In this document: positions 30,207-63,498 of the stretch, piece by piece
Layout of the letters: each line of letters begins with the position of its first letter
Numbering within the stretch: the stretch's first letter is position 1
NCBI GenBank assembly: GCA_038496445.1
Contig: JALMLS010000568.1
Span: 62,001 to 126,000, forward strand
Length of the DNA stretch: 64,000 bases
Direction: 5' to 3'
From: Trichosphaerium sp. ATCC 40318
Taxonomy: Eukaryota; Protista; Tubulinea
The notes under the pieces: generated by a model
Database searches by the model: none
The model's input: only the letters and a program-made list of their open reading frames with translations
Told to the model about the DNA's origin: nothing
Translations under genes and position numbers: made by a program

Positions 30207-31838
30207 TTACTCCTGGCGAGCGAAATTGTTATTTCCAAACTGATTTGGAATAGTCATTATTTTCCTTTTCTTGCGCGGATTTTTTTGTAGTGGTATGCTA
30301 ATAATAACGTTAGCGAGGAACTAAAATCAAAACACGTGCATATCGTTTGCGTTTCTTTTACCCTGGACTTTTTTCGCAATAGGTATATTAGTTATTTTCT
30401 TTTTTTCTTGAGAGTATTTATCTTCCATCTCTTCTAGGGAATCATAGAAATAAATATAATCTCTTTTGTCCACTTTACAGCCTTTGCAGGCTCTACATGA
30501 TGTGACGTATATCTTTATCTCATGAATTGTTTCTCCACTTGGTTTGTGTTCAAAGGTTGCCACGTATGTTCCCGTAAAAGCAAATGCTAGTATAATCTCA
30601 TATTTACTAGGTTCGCGTTCAGGACACCAATGATTTATTAGAAGCCCCTTCATTGAGTATTTCTCGTTCACATCATCGGAGTCGTCACAGCAATCAAATA
30701 GGCATTCATCGAATACAACTTGATCTTTCTTGTATGTTGGATTGCCTGTTATTTTCACTTTGTATTGGCTAATGTGCATTGAAAAGTGTAACTTGATAGA
30801 CTCCCTTTTTTCTAGCGCGTTCGAATACCAACATATCGGTTCCTATTAATCAACAATAAACACAATGGATTTGTTGTATGTACTTGCCTTAACCCTTGAT
30901 TTTGTTACCATCTTTGCACAACCATACTTGCATACATGATATGCTATTGCTTACTTTTAGTACTACAACGGACTTGATTGAGTTCGTACTGTTTGAAAGA
31001 GGATCATAATTGTTTCCGGGTAACGTTAAAGAGTTTGGTTTGCTTTGCCTTTGCTCGAGTGAAAATGATTCAACGGGTAAGTGTGTTGCTTCTTGTTCGT
31101 ATATTGCAATCGTATTAGGTATGGGTAGCTGTGAAACCTGGGTTGGCGATACAGTTTGGCGCTGGTCGCATGTGCGTTCTCTGGAAAGAGGTGCGAACTC
31201 TTCAAGGGCAGCCGGAAGAGCTGACTCATTTTGAGTCGCTGGCAGAACCAACTCTGTCTCCGTAGCTAACTGGTATGCAGCACACTTCTCAGCAAACATG
31301 TCTAGTATTTTTTGAAACTTCGCTTTCTTTTTGTGGTAAATCCAAGCAATGAATTGCACTGACTTGTTTGAGGAAGTCCGAGTATAAATGTCAGCGCCTG
31401 CGTTAGTTAGAGGAGAACTTTTGGACTGAAAAAACCCAGTACCTAGGCGAATGAGGTCGCGTATGGTGTGTAAGTTGCCGACTTTTACAGCAACGTGTAA
31501 AGGTGTATGACCGGCTGAGTTAGTGCTGTTAAAGTTGACGTAGCACTTTTTAAGGATCTCAAAAATGGGCGTTGTGGTCTCCTGGCTCGCTGCCACGTGA
31601 ACTAGAGTGTCTCCAGCTAGATTGATATAAGCGATACAAATTTCGGGCAAAATGCTAGGGATGAGCGCACAACACAGTTTGAACCGTTCTAAATTGTGCG
31701 TATTTCTAGCTAGTATTTCTTCTAGTAATGTAAGTTTGTTGGTATGTAGGGCTCTAAATGCATCAACAACTAATATCATTAATATCATTTTAACGTATTA
31801 CACGAACCCTCCTGACTCAACGCGGTAGTTGCTTCCAT
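30207..31838 (-). CDS. Pair 1 gene A1: ankyrin repeats, uncharacterised beta-rich domain X, NLS-like tail
   Basis: GDTLVHVAA, GHTPLHVAVKVG; domain X VVLK|MVTKSRVK|EPICWY...KGLLINHWCP...YEIILAFAFTGTYVATF...IKIYVTS; tail NPRKKRKI. Confidence 0.8.
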
Positions 31839-31941: not shown

Positions 31942-34900
31942 ATGTATCAAACACCGAAATTGCGTCTTGAACCCACTACCGTTTGTACATTACTTAACTT
32001 TGTTGGAAACGAAACAAGTAAAGAAGTACCCTGTTTGGAACCTCCACCTTGCCTTACACTTGTACTGGGGCTGTTTTTTCTGATTTGACAAGTATTTAGG
32101 TTAATAATGCTGGTATTGATGAGTCGCATTACTATGTGAAATGTACTGTTGTACAGAGGGAAACAAACTGTTTACGTCGTATTGCGCTTCGCGATCCAAT
32201 TATGGCTGACAAGGAACCGGCTCCTAACGTGAAAACCGTTACACGACTGTTCTGTAGAGGAACCGCAACGTTTACAGATATCCAGTTAGGTATGTTATGC
32301 TATTTTTTAATGCGCTAACATTTAAAAGGCCTTGCTACTTACACCCAAAATTTGGATAGAGCATTGACTTGCAGTCTTGAATTTTCTGTAGTCTCGGTAC
32401 GCGAGTTTGAAGGTTGCCACTAAAAAATGTAGAAACAATTTCCGAATTCAGCGCCATTAACAACCGCGATACTGCTTGTAGAAGCGCATGAGTGGATAGG
32501 CTAGTAATTTATCAGCGTATGTGCTAACAACATACAGGACATTCTCTCGATAAACCTTACATTGAAGATATTTCGCATCCGGAAATACTTGTTGGACGCC
32601 AAGAGAGTACGTTGCTTAACGACGGAAATTTATTAATATATTATTAAGCGGCGGTAATCTATGGACGCAACTTCGCGCCACCATCTATTGTTAAGTTCTC
32701 ACATGGTGAAAGCGTGGAAAAAAACCACGATAACAACTCTTATATTCCTAAAATAAAAATGCCTTGTTTTGAGTACGAAACGACCATTGACGCCTGTGTG
32801 TTATCTCGTACGTTTTCTTGTAGCACTTTGAAGTCTAATTGTAAAAAAGTAAATGGGCTATCTAATAAAATAAAGATCCAATACTACTTAGAAGATTCGC
32901 CCTATCGTGATGATTATCAAAAAACTATAGGTATGTGCGACTTCCCGTTTATGTACTCACTTGTTAAAAGGGATTAATGAACAAAAAGGGAATGATGAAC
33001 AATATCTACTCCCCAGTTTCGCAAACAAAGACAAGAAAATGGGTGAATCAGACGATGACACTTCCTGCTCTGCTTGGAACAATAATGTTGGGTCATTTTT
33101 TTCGTTTGAGTATACATTTGGGGCTCTTGGAGCTAAGAGACATTCCAACTGTATGTGATTCAATGATGCTATACATCCCTAAACAAGAACTAGACGGAGA
33201 GACCGCGCTTCATTTTGTAGCAGCCCACGGTACTGTTGACAATACGAGAGTTCTTCTCGCTGAAGGTGCAACGCTTGAAGCGAAGAATAATCGAGGCGAT
33301 ACGCCTTTATTCTATGCTGTAGCAAAACGAAATGAGCCTGTTCTTCAGTTCTTAATTGAGAACGGTACCAAGAAATATAACCTCATTTTGTTTTATGTCA
33401 TGCTTTTACTATCATAGGAGCATCTTTGGAAGTAGTAAACAAGGATGGTATAACACCTATCATGCTTGCATCGCTGTTTGGATACGATCTGGAAGTTGCA
33501 AAGAGTTTAGAAAAGCGTAGGAAACAGGTTTTAAAAGCCGGAGGTGTTGAGGTATGATTTAAAAACTCTGTACTTTGCTGCGCCTATGACCAGTTTAACT
33601 GTTTTCTTCAACAGTTTATTCCTACAAAAATCCTTTCATCAGCATACGACGATGACTCAGTAGGTGGTTGTGTTAACGACTCTTCCGCCACTATCAGTTA
33701 TAGCCCTAAAGAACTTCCCACTTCCCCAAATACAACACCACGTACCGAATCATTTGTTCACCAATTTGATGGTATACATACGCTATACGATAAAATAGAA
33801 CGCGATTGGAACGAGGAGTATCAAGTATGAGATGTGATTGTTTAATGCTTCATTTATTTATTACTAGTCTCTCAAAGAGCAACAATTTAGCGATAAAAGC
33901 AAAGAGCTAGAGAGAACATCGCAATTACGACATTTGACCGAAGTAAAAATTTTTAAATACTTCTGAATGCACGCATTAGCTTATACGAATAGGAATTTTC
34001 TGCATGCGCCACAGAGACTGCTAAGCGAATTATATCAGAAGTGCACTTGCCTGACTCAAGAAAAACTATTAAGCCTGTTACCAAGTACAACCCTCATTTA
34101 TAGCGTTTGGAAAAATACAATTGACTCTCCAGATTTTATTAATTCCTGCTTTTAGTAAACTCGGTGGCGCTGGTGGAGTTCAAGTACGTATCGTATTACT
34201 GTTTCCAAAACGGTTTTTTTAACTTTTTTTGTCTGTTTACAGTTTTTCCACAATTCCATCTTGTTCAAGTTCCCAAGTGATGGTAGAGGGATATATCAAA
34301 ACCAAGATGGTGTAAGAAAGGCGTGTGGACATGAATTGAAGGGTTTAATGTGCTTGATGGACTGTCGTGTTGAAGGTAAGACGAAATAGCATCTTGTAAA
34401 ACCTTAACTTTTCTTTGAAAAATACATACACTAACAACATTTTTCTTGTCAGCGTTATGTTTTCCTTTGATGACTATTATTGATTATCGAGGATGGCGTA
34501 TTCTAGCGGAAGCCATTTTGCCAATTGATAAACAAACTGTTATTTATGGGTCTACAGATGGTGCTCAGACTATTCATAATAGTAATGATGAAATGGACGA
34601 GAAAATGGGGATAGTCGCGAAAATTCTGAATTTAGAACCTGAAGAGGTCTGGAACCGGGATAAGACCAAGAAAACGCGGTTGCATGTCTCTTGTGATATC
34701 GAGGGGCACCTTGGACGAGATCATAGGTTCTACCTAATCGGTACACCTCTTTAACAAGTCAAATTTTTTCAAAAATATCCGTCGTCATTTTTTTGGTTAA
34801 AATCGATCACTTACTCTATTTATTTCGTCTGTAATTTAATGTATGTTTTTTTTATAGATACTGCACGTGTTATGCCACCGGCTGAACCTATAGTTGGTAT

Positions 34901-37416
34901 TAAACGTGGATTTCTTTTTCAACAACTTCGGCCTGAACTTGTTGTTATGAATTCTGATAGTCTTTGTGCTGATGCTTTTTCTGGGTTTACTATTTGTAAT
35001 GCAAAAACACATAAGAAACATATATGTGATGCAACAAGAAGATTAACTAATCATGTCATACCACACTTTGGTAAAGAATTGATGAGAGATAGAAACTTCT
35101 TGAAGAAGCTTAATGATCCTACTAATTACGTTTTTCAGCATCTAATCACTGCGCTACATCAGCATGGTATAAATGTTCGGTATTTGGTGCGTCTCAGTCT
35201 TCTTTTAACAGCGGTTTTCCTACGGTTTTCCAAACAAAAGAAAATGTTGTAACTTACCTGTTTTCCTTTTTTTGGCTTTGTCTTTTCTTCTCCCGGGGTG
35301 GGCTAAATTTTCTTTAGGCTATGTTACGGAATAGTGTACAAGGCGAAGAATTGAGAAAGTTTTTGATGACTGAGATGGTTGCGCGTGTGCTTAAACATGA
35401 ACTTCGTTCAAAAATGAGTGAACTTACGCAAACAAATGACGAGGACTTTTTTGTGCTAGTAGCTGACTTCTGCAACTTGGTTCGTATTCTTTCCTACACT
35501 AATTTACGCGGGCACTTGTGGTAGTACTTACTTATTACGTACACTAGGTGTTTCAAGATCACCACGACTCGTTCATGCTTTGGTCAACAACAATACATCA
35601 TGAACTAAAAAGTCGGTTTGTTGGATGGGATTTAGAGTCTACACAGTCTACTTATCTTAAACAAACATGTGTTCTCCCTTTCCATACGTTTAAACGGCTT
35701 ATGGCTCTAACGTGTTTTTCTATTTCGAAGGAACGTGAAGCGTATTTGAAAATGAATTGGAAAAAATTGATTTCGGGGCGTGGTGATGTCTTATTACGAG
35801 CAGCTGATGTAACCAGTCTTGATCCTAAGGTTAAGCATATACATAGGTTGTATTTTGAAGAAGCTACAGCTATGCCACATTATGCAATGAATACTAGAAA
35901 TCAAAAGAACAAAAAACATTTATTTAAAAAAGCTGTTCAAGGTTTTGGAACGGCTATTCGTGCTAAGCCTGGTGACTTTAGAGCACATCATAACCTTGGT
36001 ATATCTTACCTATACTTAGCAAAGAATATAACAAAGCTAGATAAAACAAATATTGAGGTACGGCAAGTCTAAGAAAGGAAGAAAAAAAAGAAGTTCATAA
36101 GAACTTTTTTCTTCTTGGTGTTAACTGCTTTCTGCTGTAGGTTGCGGATCAGAATAAGCTGCTACAGGCCCGTTATTACCTTGAGAAGTCTGTTTCAATG
36201 AGACCTAGAGCTGATACTCTTATTCATTTGGCGGACTGTTGTGTTGAAATTGCAAAAACTCATCACTCTCAAAAAAAGGCTCTTGATAGTTTGAACAAGG
36301 CTTTTACTCACTTTAAGAGCGCTTATAATTTAAAAAAGACTGCTGGTCTTTTTCTTAGTTGGGGTAATGCTATAATACAATGTGCGAAGGTACATCTTAT
36401 TTGGGATAAAACACGTGATGACAAGAAAAAAGAACTTTATGTTGAGGCTTGTTCTTTTTTCAAAAAAGCGCATGCTCTTGGTAACAAGAAAAATCATACT
36501 ATCTTGGTTCAGTGGGCTCTAGCACTTCATGAGATGGCTCTTATGTGCGGAGCAAAACAAAGAGATGTTTTATTTTCGAAGGCTATCAGGAAATTCGAAG
36601 AAGCAGCAAGTTTTAAAGGAAATTATGCAACTTTTTGGCATTGGGCTAATACATTGTATCGTCATGCCCGATGTCTTATTGCTGATTGTACTGAAAAAGC
36701 GTCAGAGGATAAAGGGTATATAACAATGATTTTATCTATATTAGGATCAGCAGTGGATAAATACAGACGGTACTTGAGCTAAACAACAGTTTTAAATCGC
36801 TAAACGAAAAAAAGTTTGGTTGGATTTTTTTTGCACGTGTTTTGTTTCGCTTACCTTAATTTTGTAGAACAATTCAAGCAAGGCCTACGTGTCGTAAGGC
36901 TATTTCAAATTGGGCGAAGGTATTAACGTCTATTTGGGATATATCAGCGAGGTTTGGTCCTCAGAAACAAATAGATCGATGTTTTGTTGAACAACTGACG
37001 GTTTTTTTGAAAGAGCATCACAAGGTTCATGTACCAGCTAATCAGCGTGAAATACTTTTAAAACAGATTACAGGACTTCATCCTGATGTTAAATCTATGG
37101 TTGATAATTTTTCACAGCCTCTTGTGAAACATTCACCAAAGCCACTTCAAAATGTATGGCAAACTTCACATTCTCAAGAAGCTCCTAAGAGAAGTCACTC
37201 TTCAAATGTATTAAGACAAGTTTTCGCATCAGATTCTGTTGGTACTTATGAACCAAAGGCAAAACGACAGAAGATTACGAAGGTAATAAGGCTTTTCCTC
37301 AAAGAGCTTTTCTGTAAGTTGTCTTGTTCTTTGTTTACTGACACTTTTTTACAAAGACTGAGTCACCTGATGATGACATTATTTCTATGACTCAAGATAG
37401 TCAAATGGCTGGATAA
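31942..37416 (+). CDS. Pair 1 gene B1: N-domain, IPT/TIG, ankyrin, CLU domain, TPR
   Basis: TLLNFVG..P.L.PPP; ATFTDIQLG; VEAHEWIG; IPT-like PYIEDISHPEILVG..AVIYGRNF; ankyrins GETALHFVAAHG and GDTPLFYAV; CLU RDWNEEYQ, GHELKG, PLMTIIDYRGWR, YGSTDG, DIEGHLGRDHRFYLI|DTAR, LRPEL, LHQHGINVRYL; TPRs (AHHNLG, WGNA, WANTL). Confidence 0.85.
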
Positions 37417-37699
37417 TACAGTCTTTTTCATTTTACACAACCAGCTTCACAACAATTGAATGTTCTCAGCTTGGTTCTCAACTTGGATCACAACTTGTTT
37501 TTCAAATGCCTGTATCTCATACGAATTATCAGCCAGATAACATTGTCAAAAGACGTCCAAGGTACAATTTTGCTAAGAACACCTCTTCCTAAAGGCTATG
37601 AATATCAGAGTTTTGAAAGAGAACGCTGACTTGAAGGTACTTTAATAGGTTTGGTTTTTTTTTTGCTTAACGAGAATTCAATAGTATATTTTGGCGACC

Positions 37700-39832
37700 G
37701 CTTCAAAGTTGTTCAAGTACATTCAACAAAAGTAATGAGAGGAACCTAGTAGATAGAGTACGAAGATACCACATGAATATACGATGTCTGACATTGTAAC
37801 ATATGAGAAGTTGTAAATGTGGCCATACAAAATTTGGTGTTCCAGTTATGGACAAGTAAATTTGGAACAGCCATCATTTCTTCTAAAAATAATTTATTGT
37901 CCGTGTCATTCGAGTTTACTAATATTTTCTAGAAAGTCAGTTTCTAGCACTTTTATCAGATCAGCAAAAATTGACACTTCTGTCAAATGGTGTAGATCTA
38001 TCACAATGTGAACTATTTGCGTTACTATGTTGTCCTTCATAGTGTGACTTCAAACAAACTTTGCCTCTTTTCGATTGACAAGCCGGCAGAACTACCAAAT
38101 TCCAAGAATTTCAAAAACTGTCCCAAAAGCGATGCTGCCGTTAACGCAACTAAATTTTCATTACAACAATGATGCACGCAAATCCTTTTAACTGTGCTAT
38201 GCATGTCCAACTAGCAAAGAAAACCTTCAAAATCAAAAAATACAAAAAAGAACAGCTCAACATGTTTCCCACACGTATATATGCGTTCCGTACGACTTTA
38301 CTAAATAAAAGTCTTTAGATATGCGTTTTCTTTTGTTTTGTCCGGTTCGTTTTAGCTGTTTGCTGTTAGCTCTTAACATTTTACAACACTACGCATCCTG
38401 TGCCAATAGTAACAACGACAATTGTCTAGGCGAACACCTTTATTACCTTCTATGACAACATAATGAACAAGTTCTTGGGTTGTTTAAAATAGCGACGCCA
38501 AAAAAAAACAAATGTTAAGTTTATTTTTACAATAGAGTACGGAGAACAAAACAGTTTTGGTGGATTATGAAAGCCATAGCTTAGCTCTAAATGGTTTTGT
38601 ATGTGATACATAATTTTTCTTCGTCGAGGGGTAAAGAGAACGTCCCTTCCATGAGCTCATAACATGCTTTACCAAGAGAAATGATAATGTCTTTAGTTGG
38701 GAAAGTGTGTAATAGTACTCGCTTTCCACGAGTAACGTTGGCATTGAAATGATTGGCCACAAAAGACGAAAATTGACTTACAGTAATAGGTCCCGGAATA
38801 CCTGAAAATCGAACCTCTTGGACTGTAGGGCGGTGAGCCACAGCCGACCAAAGTAGACCATGAATAAAAAAGCAGCTCTCTTTTGAATTGGATAAAGGGA
38901 TGCTGTCAGAACCTCGCACTGTGATGATATAGGAGCTGCTGGTGATGTCCAAATCAGCGTTTTCATTTTGTAGCTTTTCTATGATTATTTCTTTGGAGCC
39001 ATAAATGCGATGAGGCTTCCATGAGAAGCTCGTTAAGTTCTTTTTCAGAAAGAGTATTGAGACCATGCTTGAAAAAGCAGCTTTCTTTCGAGTAGGCTTC
39101 AGGGATGCAGTCAGAACCTCGTACAGTGATGATAAAGGAGTTGTTGGCAAAGTCCAAGTCAGTGTCTCTTTCTTTGTGAAGTTTTTGTAGCTTTTCTATG
39201 ATTATTTGTTCAGAGCCATAAATGTACTGCGAGGCTTCCATAAGAAGCTCGTTTAATTCTTTTTCATTAAAAGTATTTCTATTGATTGCAACAGGAGTTG
39301 TGGGTGTATTTCCGCAGGTGATTTGTTCATCTACAGGTTTACCAAGCAAGCTGATTTTGAACGTTGAAGAATGCTTTTTACCCTCAAGGAGATTCGACAT
39401 TTTCTCCTTCAGGATGAATTACTTTTGTGCAATCTCGCAGCCTTTTCTATTCGTTGCCTCATTTGTTTATTGTATGTAAGCCTTAATTAACATTAGCAGT
39501 TAGCTGAAACTAGAGTAATCTGATAACGTACTGCTTTGTATTTGTTCGCTATCTCACAACCCGTTTTCTGTTCTTCATCCAAAATTTGTGGCAACAAACC
39601 AATATCATCTCAAGCGAAATATCACAGTAGGAGTTTTAAATGGATATTCGCAATAATGTTGGCACAAGGTCGAAGCATGAGTGTAAGTTTCCTTCTCGCT
39701 TTTCTTCTTTTTTGCTTTCCTTGACTCTAATGTGAATTTGTTACTCACTCTCATAAGATCTCAAAACCTCAATATCATGGAAACCCATTTGAAAACCATG
39801 ACCCAATTAGAGTAATTCTTCCTGGAAACGAC
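37700..39832 (-). pseudogene. Scrambled partial duplicate of the 46.7-50.9 kb region (3' end of gene A3 plus fragments)
   Basis: 38143-39060 is near-identical to 48895-49818 but has a 2-bp deletion (ATGAGGCTT vs ATGAGAGGCTT) that shifts the frame. 39065-39540 is a more divergent repeat of the same domain. About 39548-39832 is an inverted copy of about 50651-50935. 37703-37795 matches 46733-46830, and 37803-37880 matches 47432-47510. Confidence 0.85.
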
Positions 39833-40506: not shown

Positions 40507-42083
40507 TTACTCAACACAAGACAAGGTTTTAGAGTAATGGATGACTGGATTTAGAGCACGTGTCAATTTCCTTTTTTTGGGTTGCGGACTATTTAGTTGT
40601 CTAATAACATGTTAGTACTACAACAAAATCAAGGCACTTACGTATTTTTTGCATTTCTTTTACGAGCCACGTGTTTCTTCTTTGTTATGCTTGTTTTTTT
40701 GTTTATTTCTTGGATGTATTTATCTTCCATCTCTGCTCGTGAATTGCATAAATAAATGTAATCTTTTCTATCCACTGTAAATCCTGCTGTAGCTCGATGT
40801 GACGTGACGTATATCGTTATCAGTTGAACTGGTTCTCCACTTCCCTTGTTGATATAGGTAACAACGTATGTTCCAGGGAAAGCGAATGCTAGTATTATCT
40901 CGTATTCGCTCGTCTCGCCGACCTCAGGGCACCAGTGATGTATTTTTAGCCCCTTTGTTGAGTATTTGTTGTTCACATCTTCGGGGCTGTCGCAACAATC
41001 AAATAGGCAATCATCAAATGTGTCAGCTTTGCGTTTTGGAGTGCCTGTTATTTTCACTTTGTATTGGTTAATGTGGCCTTTAAACTGTAGCTTAATAGAT
41101 CGCCTTTTTTTAGGGTCTACAGCAATTCGATACCAACAAATTACTGGAATCTATCAAACTCAACAATCAACAGCCAGCTGCATTTTGACTAAATACTTAC
41201 CTTGACTCGTGTCATGGTTACCATTTTTACGACAAAAAAGTTTGTTTTGTCGTGCTCTACTTCTTACTTTAGTACTAGAAACGTCTTGAGTACTTCCGCA
41301 CCTGTTGAGTGAGACAAATTACAACGAGAGCCCTTCACTATAAATGGATTTGAGTTGCCACATAGCTGCTCTAGTTCAATAGGGCGCAGAGTGGTTTCTG
41401 GTTTGCTTGTTAATATTGAATTCGATACACCACGTGTGGAAGGCTGTGGTGATACCGTTCTGCTCTCGTGTTCGTCAAGAGGTGTGAGATCATCAACAGT
41501 AGCCGGCAAAACCAACTCGCTCACTGTAAGCTGAGCAAACGCATCTTGAATAGCATTTAAAGTCGGTTTGTTTTTTTTGTGGTAAAGGGTGGCAATGTCT
41601 TGTACAGTTTGGTTTGATTTTGTACGAGCAGAAATATCAGCGCCTGTGTGTATTTAGAGGTTGCAAAAAGAACTAATTTGCACCTTCGCTTCTCAGCTTG
41701 CGAATGGCATCTAGGCTGCCTGTTTTTACAGCGATATGTAATGGAGTCTGGCCAAAAGAGTTAGCGCTGTTAACGTCAACAAATTCACGAAGGATTTCGA
41801 TAAATTTTGATGCATTTTTGCTATTCTCCTTATTTAATGCCACATGAAGTAGAGTGTCTCCAGCTAGCATTACATAAATAAAAACAACTATTGAGAAAAA
41901 CAAAGCGGCCGTACAGGGAAGTTTGAACCTATCCAAGTCATACTTAGTTTTATTTAGTATATCTTTGAGCTCTTCAGGCTTGTTGTCGTGCACTGCTTGG
42001 AACGCTTTTAAAACTAATAATACGTTAGCTTGTCACTATAAGACTGCGTTTTTAATTGTTACACTGACCTTGCATCTGTTCAT
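40507..42083 (-). CDS. Pair 2 gene A2: ankyrin, domain X, NLS-like tail (one splice acceptor looks defective)
   Basis: GDTLLHVAL, GQTPLHIAVKTG; KGLKIHHWCP..YEIILAFAFPGTYVVTY..ITIYVTS; tail PQPKKRKL. Paralogous to A1 with the same exon layout. Confidence 0.75.
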
Positions 42084-42178: not shown

Positions 42179-45100
42179 ATGGAACGACGATTGCCTTTTG
42201 CGCGTCTCGAAACTCCCAAGAACGTTTGTACTTTGCTTAACTTCCTTGGAAATGTAACATGTAAAGAGGTGCCTTATTTAGACCCTCCACCTCGCATTAA
42301 ACTGGTACTGGGGTTGTAGTTTCTGATTTGACTTGATTTAGCTTGATAGCCTTGTAAACGAGTGGGATTACACTGTACTATGTACTGTTGTACCAAAAAC
42401 AGACCATTTACGTCGTATTACACTTCGTGATCCTGTCTCAGACTCTGGAAATAAGTCGGTTCATACCGTACAGCGACAGTTCGTTAATAGAATCGCAACG
42501 TTTACTGACATCCAGTTGGGTATGTCAACACTATTTTATAACATATTGTTTGCTAACAATTTAAGGCCTTAAGACATACACCCAACATTTTGATCGTGCT
42601 TTGCAATGCTCTCTTGAATTTTCTGTTGTCAAAGTACGTCCGATTTTGGTTGGTTCGCCTCTAAAAAATTTAGAAAAACGACAGCCAGTCAGAGCCAATA
42701 ATAACTATGACACTTTATGTCGAAGCACATGAGTGGATAGGTTGTAATTTATCGCTTACTATGTTGTTAATAATGATAGGACATAGTCTCATGTCGCCTC
42801 ATATTGTCAATATTGCACCTAACAAAGTACGTGTTGGACATCAAGAAGGTAACGTTTGTTACATGATTTTATTGAATATTTAACATATTTTTATAAAGAA
42901 GCCGTAATCTATGGACGTGACTTTGCTCCACCATCTATTGTTTTCTTCACAACCGGTGAAAGTGTAGAAAAGGAGCATGAGTACACAGCATTTATTCCTG
43001 AAATAAAAATGCCTTGTTTGGAGCAACCAGAAGTAGTTTGGGCTCGAGTATTATCTTGTACGTTTTCTTTTGTAAACTTGTACGGTTCTTATGTTTAACC
43101 AAGTAAATGGGTATTCTAATTATGTACCTATCGAATACTATCGAGAAAATACAACATCTCAAAATGGGTATCAACAAACCATACGTGCGTGCGACTTCCA
43201 TAGTTATATTCTCACTTTTTACCAAGAAAATTATGAGAATTACGAAGGGACTTGCATTTACAAAGACGAGACAATGGGCGACTCAAGTATGGAACTTTCC
43301 TTCTTTTCTAAGAAGATAATCTTTTTACAGGTTTTTCGTTTCCAAATACCTTTGCGACGCTAGGACCAACAGGACAATCTTGCTGTATGTTTACATTGTC
43401 GCTACAAATTTCTAAACATGAACTAGACGGAGAGACTGCACTTCATTTTGTAGCAGCCCATGGTACTGTCAACAACGCAAAGATACTTCTAGGCGAAGGT
43501 GCAGCGCTTGAAGCAAAGAATGAACGAGGCGATACACCTTTATTCTATGCTGTAGCAAAACGAAATGAGCCTGTTCTTCAGTTCTTAATTGAGAATGGTA
43601 CCACAAAATAGAATCTCGTTTGGTGATTTGTCGTGCTTTTACTACCATAGGGGCATCAGTAGAAGCGGTAAATAAGGACGGAATTACGCCTATCAAACTT
43701 GCGTCACTGTTTAGATATAGTCTGGATGTTGCAAATAGTGAAGAAAAGCGTGTAATACCGGTTTTAAAAGAAGCAGGTGTTGAGGTATTATTTAAAAAAC
43801 TCAGCAAATTTTGTGGCTATTAAACGTGATTCCTTCAATAGTGTATTCCTACAAAAAACATTACATGCACATACGATAATGAAGCACATATTGCAGGTGG
43901 TTCAGATAGAGGTAAGCACGAGAACAACTTTTTTTGTGGATTTTCATTCTCTTTTAAGATGTTTATCTGGCAACCTATGCTGGCCTGTATGTTGCTATCA
44001 AGATATTTAAGGGACAATTTGCTATTGATTCAAAAAGTGATTTTAGTTTATTTAATAGAGAGGTTATCGCATTAAACTCTTTACATCACGAAAATATTGT
44101 AAAATGTCTCGGATACATTCAAGGTACTAACATATTAACTTTTTATTGTTGATTGTTTTAATATAAGGTGGTGTTACTATGAGAGGTATAACCACAAAGG
44201 TATTGGGTATTGTAACACAGTTTCTTCCTGGCTCTGATTTAGCAAATATGATTGATTGTACAAAATTTTCACTCTATCCAGTACGGGGTGTGTCTCGTTT
44301 TTGCTCGGATATTAAGTTGGTTTGTTTTAGGCAAATGGTTTCAAACAAATACTGAAGATATTACAAGGTATTGCTCAGGGTATGGCGTATATACATAAGT
44401 TAAATGGGGCACATAGAAATCTAACAGCAGAAAATGTAAGACAAAAATAGTACAATCTTTGTTACACATCCTTTTGTAGTTGAGCTATTGACCTGTTTGC
44501 TTAGGTACTAGTGTGGGCAAAAGACAAAGTAAAAATAACAGGTTTTGGACTTTGTATATACGACACAACTGGTGTTAGTAAACTTTCTTCTGGACCTTCA
44601 GTGAAAAAAAGAACTGCCAATACTAGTAGATCTCTCCGTCAATGTGTTGGTACACCAATGTACGTTCAATTCTCTACCGAGAATGCTAGCTATGGTTTTT
44701 CTTTTTATGCTTTTCGTTAAGTCTCTATCAAAGATACATGGCTCCAGAAGTACATACTTTCTTCCCCGACACTTCACTTTCAGCTAAAGTAACAATTAAA
44801 GATTGGCAAATGTACGTACTTGAGCATTATGTAAAGGCTTATAAGAATGCCGTACTAAAGCCCTTTGTAGGGCAGATGTGTATGCTTTTGGTGTACTATG
44901 TTACGAGCTTATAAGCTCTACGCGGGCTTGGGGAGCTTTAGATACAATAGAGCTAGCGTAAGATTTCAGCAATTGAGATAATTAACCCACGTGTTGTGTA
45001 GACGTCTAGTATTACATGGGCACAGGCCAGAGTTTCCTGATGGAGTTTGGGATAGTGAGGATCTAGCAGAAGTGGGAATCTTGGCACAAGACTGTTGGGA

Positions 45101-46966
45101 TGCTGATCCTAAAAAGAGGCCTACCTTTCGTCGTATCATTGACACTTTGGAGATTGTCGAACAAAAGACGAGTAAAAACAAAAAAGATCCTCAAAGTATG
45201 CCTTTAGTGTTCGAAAATGCGTTTTCTATGCTCACACTTTGTAGTTCTAGGATCAAAGATACGCTCTACATGTACGTTTAAAATGAAGCTATAAATTCCT
45301 AACTAAAGTAGATCGGGAGAGTTCAATTCCTTTTGGGGCGCATGGCACTTTAGATACTGCAAAGGATCAGGTTATGACTGAAGTCAGAGTACAAACTTGA
45401 TTGTGTAACTTACTTAATTAACAAATGATCACAGCAGGAAATCGATGCCATGGATGTAGACATTATAACTCCAAACCAACATTTAGAACATGGCAAACTT
45501 GAAAAAGATACTTACTTTAGTACGAGTATTGTCGTACGTTGTAATTGATTTGTGTGCTACATACAGTAACTTCATTAGGATAAGTTTTTTTATCCAAACA
45601 CAAGCGAAAAGGACACTTGCGTTCAAAATACTGAAGATGATATGGATGTCGAGAAAATATTGGGAATAGACGATGTGACGTTAGGTAGGGAGTTAGTCGA
45701 CATAATTTTATACCAATATCTTCAAAGTTAGTTATACTAAGTTTATTGGCAGGGTTTGAATCAGCACGTGGCGAAAAACTTACAAAACATCGAGAAGAGA
45801 TGGAATATAAATACTCTCAATCCAAGCCAGAAAAGAAGACCCAAAGAAAAAAGAGAAAAACCGAAATTACCGAGCTACAAATGAGGAAAACAAGTACACC
45901 TTCAGAAGAAACCAAAGTACAGTTTCAGTTTAAAATATATTTTCTTCCAAATAGCTTATACCTACAAACAAGCATACATCAAATTACGATGAAGAATGGA
46001 TTGACAGTATACGCAAAGGTAGGATAGATAGTACAACAGTTTAATAACATTTTGTTTGTAACAGTAATGCCAACAACGGAATTTAAACTAAACGTCAACG
46101 AGATCTGTTATGATAGAGCCAAGGTACTCTAGTTATCAAAAAGTGCTCCTTAAACTCACGTAAAAAGCCGCATGCCTTCGAGAGAGAGCCAATCCCACAC
46201 GATAATCCTATTATTGTATATCATCCAATTGGAGTCTATAATTGGCGAGACGTTCAGTATACCATTAAATGCTTGAGTAAGCTGTTTGTACAGGAATTGA
46301 CTAAATATCCTCACATATTCATAGACAAACGAAACAAGGGTGAACCCAAAACAAAAGAGGATTGGAATGTAGCATTTGACCGGGGACTTTATAATCACCT
46401 TCTTCGTAATGAAATAGCGACTATTGACGGGACACAGACTATTCTTTACTTTCAGTTTGCATATATTGGCGAATACGAGATATCTCTATTTTACTACACA
46501 CCTGATCATCCAATTGGAGTTGTCAAGTGCCATGTAGTTTCTGGGCTACCTCCTTTTGTTCCTAGTTACCTTGAAAAAACTACTCGGCCTAGTCGGTACC
46601 TTTGTTACTCATCTCTACTCTTGCTAAATATAATACTAGAAAGCGTCTACGAACAGATGATCACCCCAATGATACTTTATATCCCCATCAAAACAGTAAA
46701 ATTGTACTGGATAATGAAGCTTTTTTGGACTTGCTTCAAAGTTGTTCAAGTACATTCAACAAAAGTAATGAGAGGAACCTAGCAGATAGAGTTCGAAGAT
46801 ACCATAATGAATATACAAAGTCTGACAAAGTACGTTTTGTTTAATAGTTAAGGCGAAAGCGGTTGTATAAAACAATTTTGTGTAGGAGGATAAGGAACTC
46901 AATAATTTGGCTACTAAATTGTATGCCACTTTTAATGACCACGTAAAAGATGATACTTCAAAGTAA
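42179..46966 (+). CDS. Pair 2 gene B2: N-domain, IPT/TIG, ankyrin, TKL-type pseudokinase, C-terminal domain X-like module
   Basis: ATFTDIQLG, VEAHEWIG, PHIVNIAPNKVRVG..AVIYGRDF, GETALHFVAAHG; kinase fold VAIKIF, LHHENIV, AHRNLTAEN, KITGFGL, GTPI|YMAPE, ADVYAFG, DCWDADPKKRPTF; then RGLYNHLL..ILYFQFAYIGEYEISLF..VKCHVVSG. Confidence 0.85.
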
Positions 46967-49341: not shown

Positions 49342-51608
49342 CTAAATGGTTTTGTATGTGATACATAATTTTTCTTCGTCGAGGGGTAAAGAGAACGTCC
49401 CTTCCATGAGCTCATAACATGCTTTACCAAGAGAAATGATAATGTCTTTAGTTGGGAAAGTGTGTAATAGTACTCGCTTTCCATGAGTAACGTTGGCATT
49501 GAAATGGTTGGCCACAAAAGACGAAAATTTACTTACAGTAATAGGTCCCGGAATGCCTGAAAATCGAACCTCTTGGACTGTAGGGCGGTGAGCCACAGCC
49601 GACCAAAGTAGACCATGAATAAAAAAGCAGCTCTCTTTTGAATAGGATAAAGGGATGCTGTCAGAACCTCGCACTGTGATGATATAGGAGCTGCTGGTGA
49701 TGTCCAAATCAGCGTTTGCATTTTGTAGCTTTTCTATGATTATTTCTTTGGAGCCATAAATGCGATGAGAGGCTTCCATGAGAAGCTCGTTAAGTTCTTT
49801 TTCAGAAAGAGTATTGATGGCATGAGTAGTAATTGTAACTTTTCTCGGATCAGGTTCGGTGCTCCAGATAGTTGTAGGTGTACATCCATTATCGAGTTGT
49901 TCTTTTGTGAGTACAGGTTTACCAAGCAAGTTGATATAGAACGTTGAAGTATGCTTTTTGCCAACAAGCAGATTCGACATTTTCTCCTTCAGGATTTCAT
50001 CTGAATTACTGTTGTGCAATGTCATAGGCTTTCCTGTTCGTTGTCTTTTTTGAGAATTGTTTAAAGGCCTAAAATTAATATTAGCAGTTGTAGCTGAAAT
50101 TGAAATGACGTGCTGGTGTGCATTTTTTCGCTTTTTGGACATTTTCTCCTTCAGGATTTCATCCGAATTTCTTTTTTGCAATGACACAGGCTTTTCTATG
50201 TCTTGTCTTTTTTGAGGATTGTTTGTAGGCCTTACATTACATTAACAAACTGTAGCTTAAGCTGATAACATACTGCTTTGTATTTTTGTTTGCACGACTG
50301 TTGAGGTTGTTTTCTTGTTCTTTTACTTGTTTTTCAGATGTGTAGTATGTTATTTTATCTTTCATGCCTGCGTATTTGGAATTACGAGAGTAAGCGCGGA
50401 TGGTTATCTTAAAAATTTCTTCTTTGGAGTCAACGTGGCTGATGATCGCAGTGTACCACCAACCATGAGCAAGCGCCAATACCAAATTGTATTGTAAATT
50501 TCCATCTGGCGTTATTGTAGATGATTGTCGTTTCTCCAATACTGGATGTCTCCCTTTATTCTTATCGTGTTTTGTGTTTGGTTCGCTACAAGGGAATTTT
50601 CGTTTTAAGTCTTTGGTCTTATGCTTAACCTCACATACATATTTTGTTATGTCGTTTCCAGGAAGAATTACTCTAATTGGTTCACGGTTTTCAAATGGGT
50701 TTCCATGATATTGAGGTTTTGGGATCTTATGAGAGTGAGTAACAAATTCACATTGGAGTCAAGGAAAGCAAAAAAGAAGAAAAGCGAGAAGGAAACTTAC
50801 ACTCATGCTTCGACCTTGTGCCAACATTATTACGAATATCCATTTAAAACTCCTACCGTGATATTTCGCTTGAGATGATATTGGTTTGTTGCCACAAATT
50901 TTGGATGAAGAACAGAAAACGGGTTGCGAGATAGGTGTAAATTCACGTGACTTTTCTTCTTGTATCTTTTCTGGGGGTGACTCAAGTGTCAAATGAGCAC
51001 TGTCTGGTATTTTTCTTGAATTGCATGAACTTGTGGTTTGTACATTGTTTAAGTTTTCTTTGAGCATAGATTGCTCCTCTCTATTTCGTACGTAACTTCT
51101 TATTATTTCCTCGATTTTAATTTTACCAAAAATTCGGGCTGCTGTGGCTGGTGTCAAACCATCAGTTGTAGTTGCATTGACATCAGCTCCTACAATAGTA
51201 AAGTGAGGACAGAATATGATTAAGCTAAAACAATGAGCAGTACCCGCGTGTAAGAGAGTGCTAACGATAGGAACTTCACCTTTCACCGCGGCTACGTGTA
51301 GTGGAGTTAAGCCTCTTTTTTTAGTTTTCGCATTTACATCAAACCCGTTGTTTAACAGTAATATGACAGCGTCATGGTTTTTTCCATTTATCGCCAGGTG
51401 CAGCAACGTTTCTCCATCTTTTTAATGTGTCAGAAACGGGAGAAACATAAAAAGGAAACAAGTAAACGAACCGTCTAATTTTTCGTTTAGAAGCGAACTG
51501 GCACCTAGTAGGTGCGTTTTTTGAATTAATTCCATTGCGCTAAATGCTTATTAGCGGTAGTATGTTGAGTATTTATCGTTACATATCTAGACCCGAAGGG
51601 ACACTCAT
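49342..51608 (-). CDS. Pair 3 gene A3: ankyrin, divergent domain X, extra C-terminal domain of about 200 aa
   Basis: GETLLHLAING, GLTPLHVAAVKG, GLTPATAA; KWIFVIMLAQGRSMS|...YNLVLALAHGWWYTAII..FKITIRAYS; duplicated NSDEILKEKMS linker with KKRK; terminal domain ...IITVRGSDSIP...VRFSGIPG...CITYKTI*. Confidence 0.78.
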
Positions 51609-51744: not shown

Positions 51745-54700
51745 ATGGAGACCGATGACCGTGAAGATATATTTCCGCTTCCACCGCGCGATTCATCTTC
51801 CGCTACATGGGATGACACAGCGAACACACAGCAGACAAAGATAGACGACATTGAAAATTCATTTCCGCTAGTTGCAATGGATTGTGGGGATATTGAAACT
51901 CCAGCACATTTCTATGGCGGTGAAGTTTCGAAACAGTATTTAACACCAGAACCTTGCGTTTTTTTGGTAAAGACCCTCAATAGTATTAAAACTGACTGCT
52001 TTGTAGACCGTGAAAGAAGATGCACCAAAATGCTACGTACAGTGTACTATTGAAACGGAACCATGGCTATCACCTTTTAAACAATTGAAGCTTAGAGAAA
52101 ACAACAACCCAACGGGTACGCAGCGTTTAAGGGCCTTAAACTACGTAATTAGCTTTTCGTATAACGACAAACATCCTACAGGTTACCATTTTTTTTTGCG
52201 TGACGTTTGGATCACGTGTTTTTATTTGGTTTTTTTTTGAAGCTGAAATTATGTTGCGGGTATAAATATGCGCTTGGATAGCGAAACGAAAGGTTTTAAC
52301 ACGTCCGTCTTCAGTTACGGCCATTCCATTTTCTAGTGCCACCCATGTGCTCTTCAGCAGTTCTACCTACTCTGAATGGACTCAATCGTTAAACCAGTAT
52401 CCTGTACCTAAAAAACTAATCTATTTGTAAAGATTACATTCGAAGAAATTTTGATGCAAACGGTGTTGCCACGTTTGATGGAATTCAATTAGGTACCACT
52501 TACTGGTATTAACAATACAATAAATGATCGTTTGGATAGGAATTAACGTTAGATTGGATGGACATCCATTTAAGTTCGATGCATGCCTCCGGTTTGGTGT
52601 TTTTTTGGTATGTTTTCTATATGATCACATATGTTTCTTACGATCTACTAAAGTGGCATTCGACAGAACCTTATAAGGAATTCTTTGTTAAAGTAACGGC
52701 TCATATGTGGATGGGTTGTTTAGAAACACACTTTGTGACACTTCTTTTGACAACATCATAGGCATTGACAAACCTACAATAACAAGTATCGCACCTGATG
52801 TTATTTTACTTAATTGTGGAATGCGGGGTTAGAAATGAAGAGTTTTGGAATGTTCTTACACCTTCTCTAGGAGCAATTACAGGAAGTAATTTTATGCCAC
52901 CATCTACGATTTACTTTTATACGGAGCGAGGAATACTTGTGCATTGGTCCTGTGCACATGATCATCCCTCGTTATACATTAAACAAGTAGAAATGGCAAT
53001 ACAACGTGAACCCTGCACACTGTACGCAAGAGTAGTATCGGGTATGTCAAATGCTCTCTACGTACATTGCTGATGTTCTGTTTAAGCTAATGGATGGTCG
53101 AAAAACCATGTTGCAGTTCGATATGTTACACACGAACAAATGACTCAAGGCTTTCGTGTTGGAGCTCCTGATGAGAATAAGTCAAGTTCCCCTCCAAGAT
53201 ATGACGTAAGCGACTTCCTGTTACTCGAGTCAGCAGAACAGACTGTGATCCTTCGCAAAGGTTTTGATTACGAATACACACTTTCTAAACTTGGTTCAAG
53301 TGGTAGCAATAGATGTACGTTGCGTCAAGCATATGTCACTTACAGAACTAGACGGAGATACCACACTTCATTTCGTAGCAGCACATGGTACAGTTGAAAA
53401 TGCTGAAGATCTTCTTTCTAAAGGAGCATGTCTCGAATCTCAAAACGAACGAGGTGATACACCTTTATTCTGGGCAGTGGCAGCAAAAAATGCAAATGTA
53501 CTTAAAGTTTTGATTGACAAAGGTACACAAACTTTGATATTATCTCATCGTATTACAAGTTCACTTTTACTTGGTAGGGGCATCAACACAAGCTGTAAAC
53601 AAGGATGGTATGACACCTCGAAAACTTGCATCGCTGCTTGGATATAGTTTAGAAAATGGAAACGCCTATCATAACAAAGATAGCCATGTTAGGAACAAAA
53701 ACGATCAGTGAGTATTAGAAACAATAACACTGCTTATTTTCTATTCTAGGGAAGAAGAGGTTGAAGAGGGCATACCGAAACAAGGTAACATACATTCAGG
53801 AATACTGGTTTTTTCTTGTTTTGACGCCGATTAGTAAAAAGATGTGTTAAAGAGACGCCTACAAGTGTTTTAAAAGCAGCAGGAGTTAAGGTACAGTTCA
53901 AAAGCAGAATATATTTTGTTGTTGTAATCGATTTGTTGCTTCTGAACCTATTACTTCTATAGTTTATTCCTACAAACAACATTGTATCTACATATGATAT
54001 TGAGGCATATCTTGGAGGTGATATATACGGTGGGTTGTATAGTTTTGAGACTTGTTTTATTAACTTGTGTTCTTTTCATAGAGGTGTATCTGGCTGCCTT
54101 CAAGGGTGAGAGAATTGCTGTTAAGATTATTAAGGGATATACTGCCATTGATTCTGAAGGATTTACTGCTTTATTTCATAGAGAGGTTATGACATTGAAG
54201 TATTTACATCACGAAAACATTGTGAATTGTCTTGGATACACAGAAGGTACACATTTGTGATACTATTTGATATAAAGTAACGGTCATAAGGTGATATCAC
54301 TATGGGAAATGCATCGATGAGTGTATTGGGTATTGTAGTAGAGCATATTCCTGGTCATGATTTAGCAACAATCATCGAAATACAAGAAGAATACCTTGCG
54401 AATTTAACAATACTTCAAAAATTTTGGAAATTGGTATCCATACTAAGACTATGCTAATGTGCTAAGTTGTTTTAGCCAAATTTTGTGTCTGAGAGTTTCA
54501 AACAAAGGTTGAAGGTTTTAAAAGGCATTGCTCTCGGTATGGAGCATTTACATAAATTAAATGGAGCTCACAGGAATTTAAGAGCCGAGAATGTATGAGA
54601 CCATCATTACATTTGATCAACTTTAATGTTTTTGTTGTTTAGGTTATGGTACAGCCGGGAGGAAATGTAAAAATTATAGGCTTCGGTTTATCTATGATTT

Positions 54701-55497
54701 GTGGTACAAGTGCCAGTACTATACAAACTACCAGCTCACTCAATGAAACCCATGAGCAAATGGGTACACCAATGTGCGTTCAATATCAACGACAAAGACA
54801 TCTTTTTGCACTTTACCAATGTATTCTTAAGATACATGGCTCCAGAAGTACACGCTCTCTTCCCTGACATTCCAGGAAAAGTAACAATTAAAGCTTGGCA
54901 ACAGTACGTACTTAAGCATGATGTAAAAAAAATTGTTTGTAGGGCGGATATATATGCGTTTGGTGTATTATGTTATGAGCTATTATGCTCCAAACGCGCT
55001 TGGAGTGGTGTTATAGATACAACTGAGCTTGGGTATGAGTTATTCTGCACAATACTGAGATAATTAATGTTGTTTAGACGTCTTGTATTACAAGGGCAAC
55101 GGCCACAGTTCCCTGATGAAATTTGGGAAAGAGTTGAGGAATCAGAACTGGCAATCTTGGCGCAAGACTGTTGGGAGTGTGATCCTAAAGATAGACCTAC
55201 ATTTGTTCATATTATTACTGTTCTAGATTACATTGAGCAGATGTACACGGATGAAGCACAATACTTAAGTGGTAAGTTGGGTTTTATTACAGACTATCTA
55301 AAGTGAAACACTAATACTGACAAAATACAAAAGACCATGATCCACTGGATGCAGTGCTCAAGTTAGCAACTAATAAAGCCACTTGTCAAAAGGAAATACA
55401 AAAATGCAATGCAAAATACCAAAAAGAATATTATGAGTGGCTGGCTACAGAAGCAAGGTACGACGCAAGAAGGAATTTTGATAAAGACACAAGCTAA
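51745..55497 (+). CDS. Pair 3 gene B3: N-domain, IPT/TIG, ankyrin, TKL-type pseudokinase
   Basis: GVATFDGIQLG, VTAHMWMG, PTITSIAP..AITGSNF, GDTTLHFVAAHG, GDTPLFWAV; IAVKII, LHHENIV, AHRNLRAEN, KIIGFGL, YMAPE, DCWECDPKDRPTF. Confidence 0.85.
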
Positions 55498-57113: not shown

Positions 57114-57497
57114 TTAAGTGAGAATACAATCGCGCATTTGTACTTTAATACCAGCAATAATACAAGAATGTCCACGGCATTGGCCATTTCTCTTACACCA
57201 TCTTCTTGAACTGTTAACTTTACCAGGCTCCAAGACAATGTGATCTGGGTTAGTACAAAAGGTACAATGACACAAGTGTGATGCATCTACTAAAGTACGG
57301 GCCAAACCCGGATACCATAAGTAGTTGCCATCAAGCCCTTTGTCAAACAAAGTAATGCCCTTCTCCACATATAGAACTGTATGGGCTAGATTGAAAAGTC
57401 TGCTCATTTTTCTGGTTCTAAATACAGCACGGAGGTACCCTGCACTAGTGGTTGACCCTCTGGTGCACAATTTGCACCCGGTATCTAGAATATACAA
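57114..57497 (-). CDS. His-Cys box (I-PpoI-like, His-Me finger) endonuclease domain, free-standing; start uncertain
   Basis: DASHLCHCTFCTNPDHIVLEPGKVNSSRRWC...C.GH.C fits the SHLCH..C.NP.H...E...N..R..C zinc-binding loop. Upstream GCKLC...GY fits the HNH-type N-terminal strand. Confidence 0.85.
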   Translation of the reverse strand: MYILDTGCKLCTRGSTTSAGYLRAVFRTRKMSRLFNLAHTVLYVEKGITLFDKGLDGNYLWYPGLARTLVDASHLCHCTFCTNPDHIVLEPGKVNSSRRWCKRNGQCRGHSCIIAGIKVQMRDCILT

Positions 57498-57729: not shown

Positions 57730-58432
57730 ATTTTTTTTTTTTTTTTTTTTTGAAGTAGGTATTTGACAAGTCAAAGTTCCTCAGAGTCCTTAATCGGATC
57801 GCACATAAGTCACGGCGGCGTTAGCCGCCGTGTACCCTTCCCAAGGCGTGCAATGCACGCCTCTTACATGGGGTTGGGTAGTCTGAGTAAACCCACTGTT
57901 GTCCTTTCGGGTGGATCGAGATTCACCCCAGGACGGTATAATTAATAAATTATGTAATAGGCGGTTCTACAAACCTTCTATATATACTGTCCAGTTCAGG
58001 ACATTCAACATATTCTCCATCGCTATATTTCCACCAATCCTCGTGCTTTTTACATCTTGATATATATATATCATGCGCATTGTTAACCAAAATGTGTTGC
58101 ACTTCTTTAAGTGTCTTGGTCACTATTTTCTTTTTAAAACTTTGCTCAATAATGCTATCAGAGAGACCAGCGGGTATGTACGCCTTAGCACCCAACTCCC
58201 GTACTTCAGCGGAAGGTGCATACCTAGCTTTAAAGCTGGCATGATCATTAGAGGACGGCCAAAACCTCTTGTACTTAACTCCAGGAAGATTATCTTCCAT
58301 CACCTTTTTAATACGTTTAGCGTTGTGTACACGTATGTGTTCATGTTCAACACAGTCCGCTAGAATATGCATAGTGGTTTCCTCAGAGGGACAGAAGACA
58401 CATACACCATCAGAGTACTTATGATTATGCAT
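57730..58432 (-). mobile_element. 5'-truncated non-LTR retrotransposon (LINE) 3' end with poly(A) tail
   Basis: ORF2 C-terminal zinc knuckle CVFCPSEETTMHILADC..H, then HDIYISRCK; stop at 57950; about 200-nt 3'UTR; poly(T) run on the plus strand at about 57730-57751. Confidence 0.85.
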
Positions 58433-63190: not shown

Positions 63191-63498
63191 GGCTACGGGA
63201 GCAAATACGAGATATACTAGACATTGATGGAGCATTTATTGTTACCTTTAAACGAAAGCCATGGACGTTAACACATTATACAGCGGACTCTGTTTTTTTT
63301 TCTTAGTTGCCACTATTTTTGTTCATTGTACTTGTAAAATAACCATATTCAGATTACTGTTCTTGGCATTATAACGCCACCAGGTTGCTCATAATTACTT
63401 CATCAAAACAGCGAAAAAACCTGTGAAGTTCAAAATAAAACTTTCTCAAATAATAAGCACAAATCTACGTTATTTATTGTTAAGACTACTTCCAGGTG

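Follow-up and report, generated by a model that had tools for sequence, protein, structure and literature searches.

Pseudokinases account for roughly a tenth of kinomes, and in one of them, mouse MLKL, the HRD motif of the catalytic loop reads HRN. Defects of the glycine-rich loop are also frequent, with 84% of human pseudokinases violating the GxGxxG consensus (PMC2639636). The described proteins that come closest to the genes treated here are VRK3, which is inactive, does not bind ATP and serves as a scaffold or regulator (PMC2639636), and the plant kinases ILK1-3, some orthologues of which also lack the Asp of HRD (PMC5376563, PMC9403797). Here we analyse a stretch of 64,000 nt from the amoebozoan Trichosphaerium sp. 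ATCC 40318 (contig JALMLS010000568.1, positions 62,001 to 126,000; hereafter the window, in whose own numbering all coordinates are given), where two neighbouring paralogous genes, B2 and B3, encode ankyrin repeats followed by a kinase domain with three defective motifs. This domain is probably a catalytically dead pseudokinase that has been kept for its fold and acts as a docking module alongside the ankyrin repeats.

At the catalytic loop, HRD is replaced by HRN in both copies, within AHRNLTAEN in B2 (HRN at 44412-44420, CAT AGA AAT) and within AHRNLRAEN in B3 (54569-54577, CAC AGG AAT). In the same way, DFG is replaced by GFG, within KITGFGL in B2 (GFG at 44541-44549) and within KIIGFGL in B3 (54679-54687, GGC TTC GGT). 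These substitutions lie where the initial annotation of the window had placed them, but a third defect was missed by it: the glycine-rich loop is degraded to IAGGSDRD in B2 (IAGGSDR at 43890-43910) and to LGGDIYE in B3 (LGGDIY at 54011-54028), compared with the canonical GxGxxGxV. Only the middle of the three glycines has been kept, acidic residues have been gained, and the loop differs by one residue in length between B2 and B3. The assignment of the GFG is backed by its position, 13 residues past the catalytic-loop Asn in both copies, which we take to be the DFG spacing of PKA, and by its alignment to the DFG of related kinases (for example, VKITGFGL in B2 against VKISDFGL); likewise, HRNLTAEN of B2 aligns with the catalytic loop of TYK2. 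The rest of the kinase core is largely in place. As had been annotated, the VAIK/IAVK Lys (B2 YVAIKIF, Lys at 44000-44002; B3 RIAVKII, Lys at 54123-54125), the APE motif (YMAPEV in both) and the C-lobe are retained, the latter with its alphaF Asp (DVYAFG in B2, DIYAFG in B3) and a terminal CW..DP..RPTF, and so are the alphaC Glu (REV) and the Asn of the catalytic loop. The two copies also have in common a long, Ser/Thr-rich activation loop and a family-specific insert (KVTIKxWQ), 9-11 residues long, that follows APE and precedes alphaF. At the sequence level, a domain counts as a pseudokinase if the beta3 Lys, the HRD Asp or the DFG Asp is missing; B2 and B3 have lost both aspartates and retain the lysine.

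Assignment of splice sites from the reading frame and the GT-AG rule divides the kinase domain of each copy into eight exons. The extents first proposed (43840-45170 and about 53960-55230) were right as to the place, and their bounds are corrected here to 43842-45195 (+) for B2 and 53963-55271 (+) for B3. The seven introns inside each domain are all GT..AG, measure 39-74 nt and match in position and phase between B2 and B3, and the frames are open throughout both copies. Exon 8 is followed by an eighth intron, which a transcript confirms in B3 but which in B2 relies on a likely phase-1 donor at 45196, read from the sequence after the equivalent intron of B3; without this donor the open frame of B2 exon 8 extends to a stop at 45279-45281. 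In B2, the ankyrin repeats and linker (43408-43784 (+), Pfam Ank_2 1.9e-11, with an intron at about 43603-43637) stand directly 5' of the kinase domain, whose exon 1 (43842-43911) contains the degraded glycine-rich loop. Exon 2 (43959-44123) carries the beta3 Lys, the alphaC Glu and HHENIV and matches Pkinase and PK_Tyr_Ser-Thr on the N-lobe, while exon 3 (44168-44280), GT-AG bounded and phase-consistent, encodes beta4-beta5, hinge and alphaD and is the most divergent of all. Exon 4 (44331-44435) comprises alphaE and the catalytic loop (PK_Tyr_Ser-Thr, 5.1e-6), and exon 5 (44505-44659) runs from the GFG through the activation loop to a final GTP. Exon 6 (44734-44811), 74% identical to that of B3, holds YMAPEV and the insert, here KVTIKDWQ; exon 7 (44871-44957) encodes alphaF, with DVYAFGVLCYEL, and again matches PK_Tyr_Ser-Thr; and exon 8 (45002-45195) encodes alphaH-alphaI, with CWDADPKKRPTF. 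The exons of B3, also on the plus strand, follow the same plan: the glycine-rich loop is in exon 1 (53963-54029), the beta3 Lys and alphaC Glu in exon 2 (54082-54246), the HRN in exon 4 (54476-54592) and the GFG in exon 5 (54643-54773), with exon 3 (54291-54433) being 10 residues longer than its B2 equivalent and exons 6-8 occupying 54832-54903, 54943-55032 and 55078-55271. A ninth exon (55334-55497), whose exact bounds were read from the sequence, encodes a post-kinase tail that starts with DHDPLDAVLK.

The confirmation of splicing by RNA that the initial annotation had called for is now at hand for both genes. A 196-nt RNA contig from the single public run in which this DNA is represented maps to B2 with 0 mismatches, at 43716-43782, 43840-43909 and 43957-44013, skipping the GT..AG introns at 43785-43841 (57 nt) and 43912-43958 (47 nt). 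The junction between the ankyrin linker and the kinase domain, including the exon end at 43784 and the acceptor of exon 2, is thus transcribed and spliced exactly as modelled. For B3, the 159-aa database peptide P0003, from transcriptome MMETSP0405 of Trichosphaerium sp. ATCC 40318 (taxid 498012), is 100% identical to spliced exons 6-9, and the introns, among them that at 55272-55333, are absent from it precisely as had been modelled beforehand. A second RNA contig, about 90% alike to B2 44363-44563, covers the exons with HRN and GFG; it leaves out 44440-44510, nearly the intron modelled at 44436-44504, and has 2 letters without a match where the two parts join. It must derive from another expressed paralogue or allele outside the window.

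Selection was estimated between B2 and B3 by the Nei-Gojobori method (NG86), exon by exon, with split codons excluded, counts pooled and 2000 bootstraps. Over the whole kinase domain (293 codons, 56% amino-acid identity) the synonymous divergence (dS) is 0.69 and the nonsynonymous divergence (dN) 0.31, a dN/dS of 0.45 with a bootstrap interval of 0.31-0.62, and all 2000 bootstraps stayed below 1. This figure conceals two different regimes: the C-lobe is under purifying selection, whereas the N-lobe is relaxed. In the C-lobe (exons 4-8, 180 codons) dS is 0.84, dN 0.25 and dN/dS 0.30 (0.19-0.47), a constraint about equal to that of the adjacent ankyrin repeats and linker (99 codons, dS 1.08, dN 0.28, dN/dS 0.26, interval 0.13-0.46), and the ratio falls to 0.14 in the catalytic-loop exon and to 0.12 in the alphaF exon. 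In the N-lobe (exons 1-3, 113 codons), by contrast, dS is 0.50, dN 0.41 and dN/dS 0.81, with an interval of 0.47-1.43 that makes it indistinguishable from neutral, and the hinge/alphaD exon 3 is just 38% identical between the copies, with dN exceeding dS. The altered motifs themselves have been preserved through synonymous change: five of the six HRN/GFG codons differ between B2 and B3 (CAT/CAC, AGA/AGG, GGT/GGC, TTT/TTC and GGA/GGT), the Asn codon being AAT in both, and Asn and Gly are each a single transition away from Asp, with reversion in neither copy. Intron identity was uninformative as a neutral yardstick, since these short AT-rich introns align about equally well when shuffled. The initial annotation had taken the two losses shared by B2 and B3 as a sign of selection rather than decay. 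That the genes are maintained is borne out by the open frames, the matching introns, the spliced RNA and the dN/dS of 0.45, and where it had named a ratio near 1 and no expression as the marks of the contrary, both genes are transcribed and the ratio is well below 1. The shared losses, nevertheless, say nothing about selection when considered alone, as they are most simply inherited once from a common ancestor; it is constraint and expression, not the coincidence of two losses, that argue for selection.

Regarding the identity of the domain, databases were searched exon by exon or with P0003. Single kinase exons of B2 match the Pfam families PK_Tyr_Ser-Thr and Pkinase at profile positions 18-72, 101-133, 183-201 and 232-258, and P0003, which represents the C-lobe of B3, is annotated with precomputed PF07714 and PF00069 matches, so the kinase identity is not due to chance. 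The B3 C-lobe gave 347 kinase matches in the PDB. The catalytic-loop exon scores higher against PK_Tyr_Ser-Thr than against Pkinase, and the best PDB matches mix tyrosine kinases (TK; TYK2, Eph, Src, FGFR) with tyrosine kinase-like ones (TKL; LIMK, RIPK1, plant kinases), by which the domain is classified as TK/TKL-like. PDB searches with the N-lobe exon alone and with the activation-loop exon alone returned no match, and human ILK is missing from the 60 highest-ranking PDB matches, both for the B3 C-lobe and for the catalytic-loop exon. When the C-terminal exon of B2 was compared with 1.84 billion representatives, 94 matches were obtained, of which P0003, that is, B3, is the sole close one; the others are generic TK/TKL kinases from various protists and fungi, roughly 26-60% identical across short segments. 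Most of these relatives are canonical, 59 scanned domains having both HRD and DFG, and the best multi-exon match, P0067, also has both. As the nearest database kinases carry canonical HRD, DFG and GxGxxG, the losses in B2 and B3 are derived. Those relatives that were scanned with Pfam have no ankyrin repeats. Word searches with P0003 and with an N-lobe stretch of B3 retrieved P0003 only, no viral relative was found in an IMG/VR scan, and a metagenome scan yielded two unrelated kinases only (one bacterial, the other an AT-rich multi-kinase open reading frame (ORF) with HGD and NFG). Close relatives outside Trichosphaerium were not found in the databases searched.

In both of these expressed members of a Trichosphaerium gene family, ankyrin repeats lead directly into a TK/TKL-like fold from which three elements are missing: the catalytic base (HRD to HRN), the Asp that binds metal (DFG to GFG) and all but one of the three glycines of the glycine-rich loop. 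Most probably, these losses were already present in the ancestor shared by the two copies and have been retained since then. In the scheme of Scheeff et al. (PMC2639636), a degraded and acidic glycine-rich loop together with two further defects predicts inactivity and poor or no ATP binding, and we infer that the domain is catalytically inactive, binds ATP weakly or not at all and plays a scaffold role. The combination of a near-neutral N-lobe with a constrained C-lobe locates the conserved function on the C-lobe surface and not in a nucleotide switch. The part under constraint, which includes the catalytic-loop scaffold, alphaF to alphaI and the family-specific insert after APE, would thus serve for protein-protein docking or scaffolding together with the ankyrin repeats, and the Ser/Thr-rich activation loop may be regulated by other kinases.

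Several points weigh against this interpretation. The retained beta3 Lys, alphaC Glu, VAIK Ala and catalytic-loop Asn would permit some nucleotide binding; the RNA evidence for B2 consists of a single short contig from a single run; and the selection estimates are coarse, given that only two sequences were compared. In addition, plant ILK1, an ankyrin protein with a Raf-like kinase domain that has one glycine in its loop and GFG, phosphorylates substrates with Mn2+, and its activity was not abolished by an HRD-to-HRN change (PMC9403797, PMC5376563). According to this precedent, the motif pattern alone is no proof of inactivity, and a weak activity may persist. The alternative that survives best is an atypical active kinase resembling ILK1 or CASK, with a non-canonical, Mn2+-dependent or metal-independent phosphotransfer, although we consider it unlikely. 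Architecture and motifs are common to B2/B3 and plant ILK1-3, the Lys, Glu and catalytic-loop Asn are all present, and CASK is active despite its GFG (PMC2639636). CASK, however, has an intact glycine-rich loop and retains HRD, while in B2 and B3 three elements have been lost jointly, the loop has even gained Asp and Glu, the N-lobe evolves near neutrality, and inactivity is what the degraded loop and the two further defects predict (PMC2639636).

Rather unlikely, too, is the nucleotide-binding conformational switch put forward in the initial annotation, an MLKL-like device in which ATP binding without catalysis would toggle the attached domains. The Lys and Ala of VAIK/IAVK and the alphaC Glu are retained, MLKL (GFE, HGK) binds ATP via its VAIK Lys (PMC6013482), and ATP is bound by some pseudokinases with degraded glycine-rich loops, such as GC-C and STRAD (PMC2639636). 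The proposal is weakened, on the other hand, by the state of the ATP-binding lobe in B2 and B3: the loop is acidic, keeps its middle Gly only and differs in length between the copies, the exon encoding hinge and alphaD is the one that has diverged most, and the dN/dS of the N-lobe contrasts with that of the C-lobe. Furthermore, a four-helix bundle or any other executioner domain that such a switch could drive is absent.

The organization of the locus brings in a third alternative. The window, with a GC content of 36-39% and numerous short introns, has a eukaryotic character, in line with the Trichosphaerium draft genome, where introns average 75 bp and exons 154 bp at a GC content of 37.7% (PMC10521059). 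It contains four tandem units, each of them formed by a minus-strand A gene placed head-to-head with a plus-strand B gene: A at 30327-31800 (-) with B from 31940 (+) in pair 1, 40638-42000 (-) with 42176 (+) in pair 2, 50759-51406 (-) with 51745 (+) in pair 3, and 59744-60922 (-) with 61400 (+) in pair 4. In the products of the A genes, ankyrin repeats (Pfam Ank_2) are combined with a domain of ~140 aa at the C-terminus, here called domain X, that has no Pfam match. The kinase domain is present in B2 and B3 and absent from B1, the nearest relative of B2 (ankyrin dS 0.37). At 33615-33660, B1 retains the first residues of the exon encoding the glycine-rich loop (FIPTK...) and diverges after that, and a weak CLU/eIF3_p135 Pfam match (E 1.6e-4) appears downstream, at 34839-35249; as judged from these sequences, the kinase module has been replaced in B1. 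In B4 (62909-64000), unrelated sequence follows the ankyrin repeats, and a kinase exon is not visible in the ~900 nt up to the end of the window. The lack of the kinase in B1 indicates that at least one paralogue can do without this module.

It could be proposed that the kinase-like domain serves a paired sensor as an integrated decoy or bait, a mimic of a host kinase that is hit by a pathogen such as a giant virus, with the attack being reported through the ankyrin protein and its partner A. Four tandem head-to-head pairs whose B genes differ in their C-terminal modules would suit such a system, as would the fast evolution of the N-lobe and the heavy giant-virus gene traffic reported for the Trichosphaerium genome (PMC10521059), and the proposal is compatible with a docking module, of which it would be a special case. 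Nonetheless, NLR-like, death-fold or other signalling domains are absent, the IMG/VR scan revealed no viral relatives, and the support comes entirely from analogy, which leaves it improbable. The extended version, in which ankyrin proteins carry several exchangeable baits at their C-terminus (the pseudokinase in B2 and B3, a CLU/TPR-like module in B1) within a paired amoebal sensor/decoy locus comparable to plant integrated-decoy pairs and to ZED1/RKS1, possibly directed against giant-virus factors that target host kinases, seems slightly more improbable still. Finally, that B2 and B3 are decaying copies, either young pseudogenes or mis-modelled exons, is very improbable and was rejected: the kinase has been lost in B1 and is not seen in B4 before the window ends, and the N-lobe ratio does not differ from 1, but both copies have open frames, phase-conserved GT-AG introns and spliced transcripts, and their C-lobe maintains a dN/dS of 0.30 at a dS of ~0.8.

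Several other elements of the window were recorded around the pairs. A DNA segment of ~95 nt found 3' of B2 (46713-46805) is repeated 3' of B1 (37680-37772) with roughly 80-95% identity, and it is probably there that the duplicated unit ends. Also 3' of B2, a candidate second copy of domain X was considered at 46273-46779 (+); it was left unconfirmed, as its BLASTP match to the domain X of A2 is too weak (E=0.069, 25% identity over 63 aa). Between pairs lie long, paralogous ORFs of the minus strand, at 38587-39400 (-) and 49342-50187 (-), whose C-terminal halves are near-identical; the latter, the one of the two that was scanned, has no Pfam match. Between pairs 3 and 4, an ORF at 57117-57497 (-) matches the Pfam family zf-His_Me_endon (homing-endonuclease zinc loop, E 6.4e-11) and is adjoined by a 160-aa Cys/His-rich ORF without Pfam match (57950-58432); this region may be a mobile-element remnant.

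The initial annotation had further described the kinase-like domain as fused to a putative transcription factor, a claim that the present analysis does not sustain. Exon-wise Pfam scans (E<=1) of the upstream exon pieces of B2 and of one B3 piece yielded no match to any family 5' of the ankyrin repeats, be it a DNA-binding one (RHD or CG-1) or an IPT/TIG one, as would mark an NF-kB p105-, CAMTA- or Spt23-like factor, domains split by introns being not scorable in this way, and an Atlas search with the upstream B exons returned nothing usable. With neither search giving a match, the label depends only on a pattern, PxIxxIxP ... GxNF, that extends over two upstream exons and looks TIG-like by eye.

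Among the known systems, VRK3 offers the closest likeness in the motifs. It combines a degraded acidic glycine-rich loop (TRDNQG) with HGN and GFG, and retains the beta3 Lys (FSLK) and a conserved fold (PMC2639636); unlike B2 and B3, it belongs to the CK1/VRK group instead of being TK/TKL-like and has no ankyrin repeats, so that the homology is that of the kinase superfamily only. In architecture, the nearest counterparts are plant ILK1-3, with ankyrin repeats directly N-terminal of a TKL-type domain, a single conserved Gly in the glycine-rich loop and GFG (PMC5376563, PMC9403797). The same arrangement, ankyrin repeats immediately N-terminal of the kinase, is present in B2, where the Ank_2 match is significant and the junction is confirmed by RNA. 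However, ILK1 retains HCD and is an active kinase that prefers Mn2+, and the B proteins differ further by a lengthy additional region at the N-terminus and by the tail after the kinase; since the exon-wise searches brought out no specific kinship in sequence, the resemblance between both groups is probably convergent. Metazoan ILK also consists of ankyrin repeats followed by a scaffold pseudokinase with a degraded glycine-rich loop, but its substitutions are different (RHA, DVK; PMC2639636). The analogy with MLKL drawn by the initial annotation holds at the motif level, in that MLKL has lost both Asp (GFE; HGK in the human protein), retains the Lys of VAIK and is controlled via its activation loop (PMC6013482); it does not go beyond that, since MLKL has an N-terminal four-helix-bundle executioner and a brace where the B proteins have ankyrin repeats, and GFE where they have GFG, and VRK3 and plant ILK1-3 are closer. 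HER3 (HRN) and CASK (GFG) each share one of the defects of B2 and B3, but have it as their single defect next to an intact glycine-rich loop, CASK being active and HER3 listed as experimentally inactive (PMC2639636).

In this context, what B2 and B3 encode is a genuine dead kinase of a rather common sort, and one more of them is not surprising. What it adds is a clean natural triple defect of the glycine-rich loop, HRN and GFG, as in VRK3, together with the ankyrin-GFG design of plant ILKs, which would have arisen independently in an amoebozoan, and a visible split of selection, which is relaxed in the ATP lobe and acts as a constraint in the C-lobe. Moreover, the presence of the module in some tandem paralogues and its replacement in others constitute a natural experiment on what a dead kinase domain contributes to the proteins that carry it, with VRK3 and plant ILK1-3 as the described systems to which B2 and B3 are best compared.

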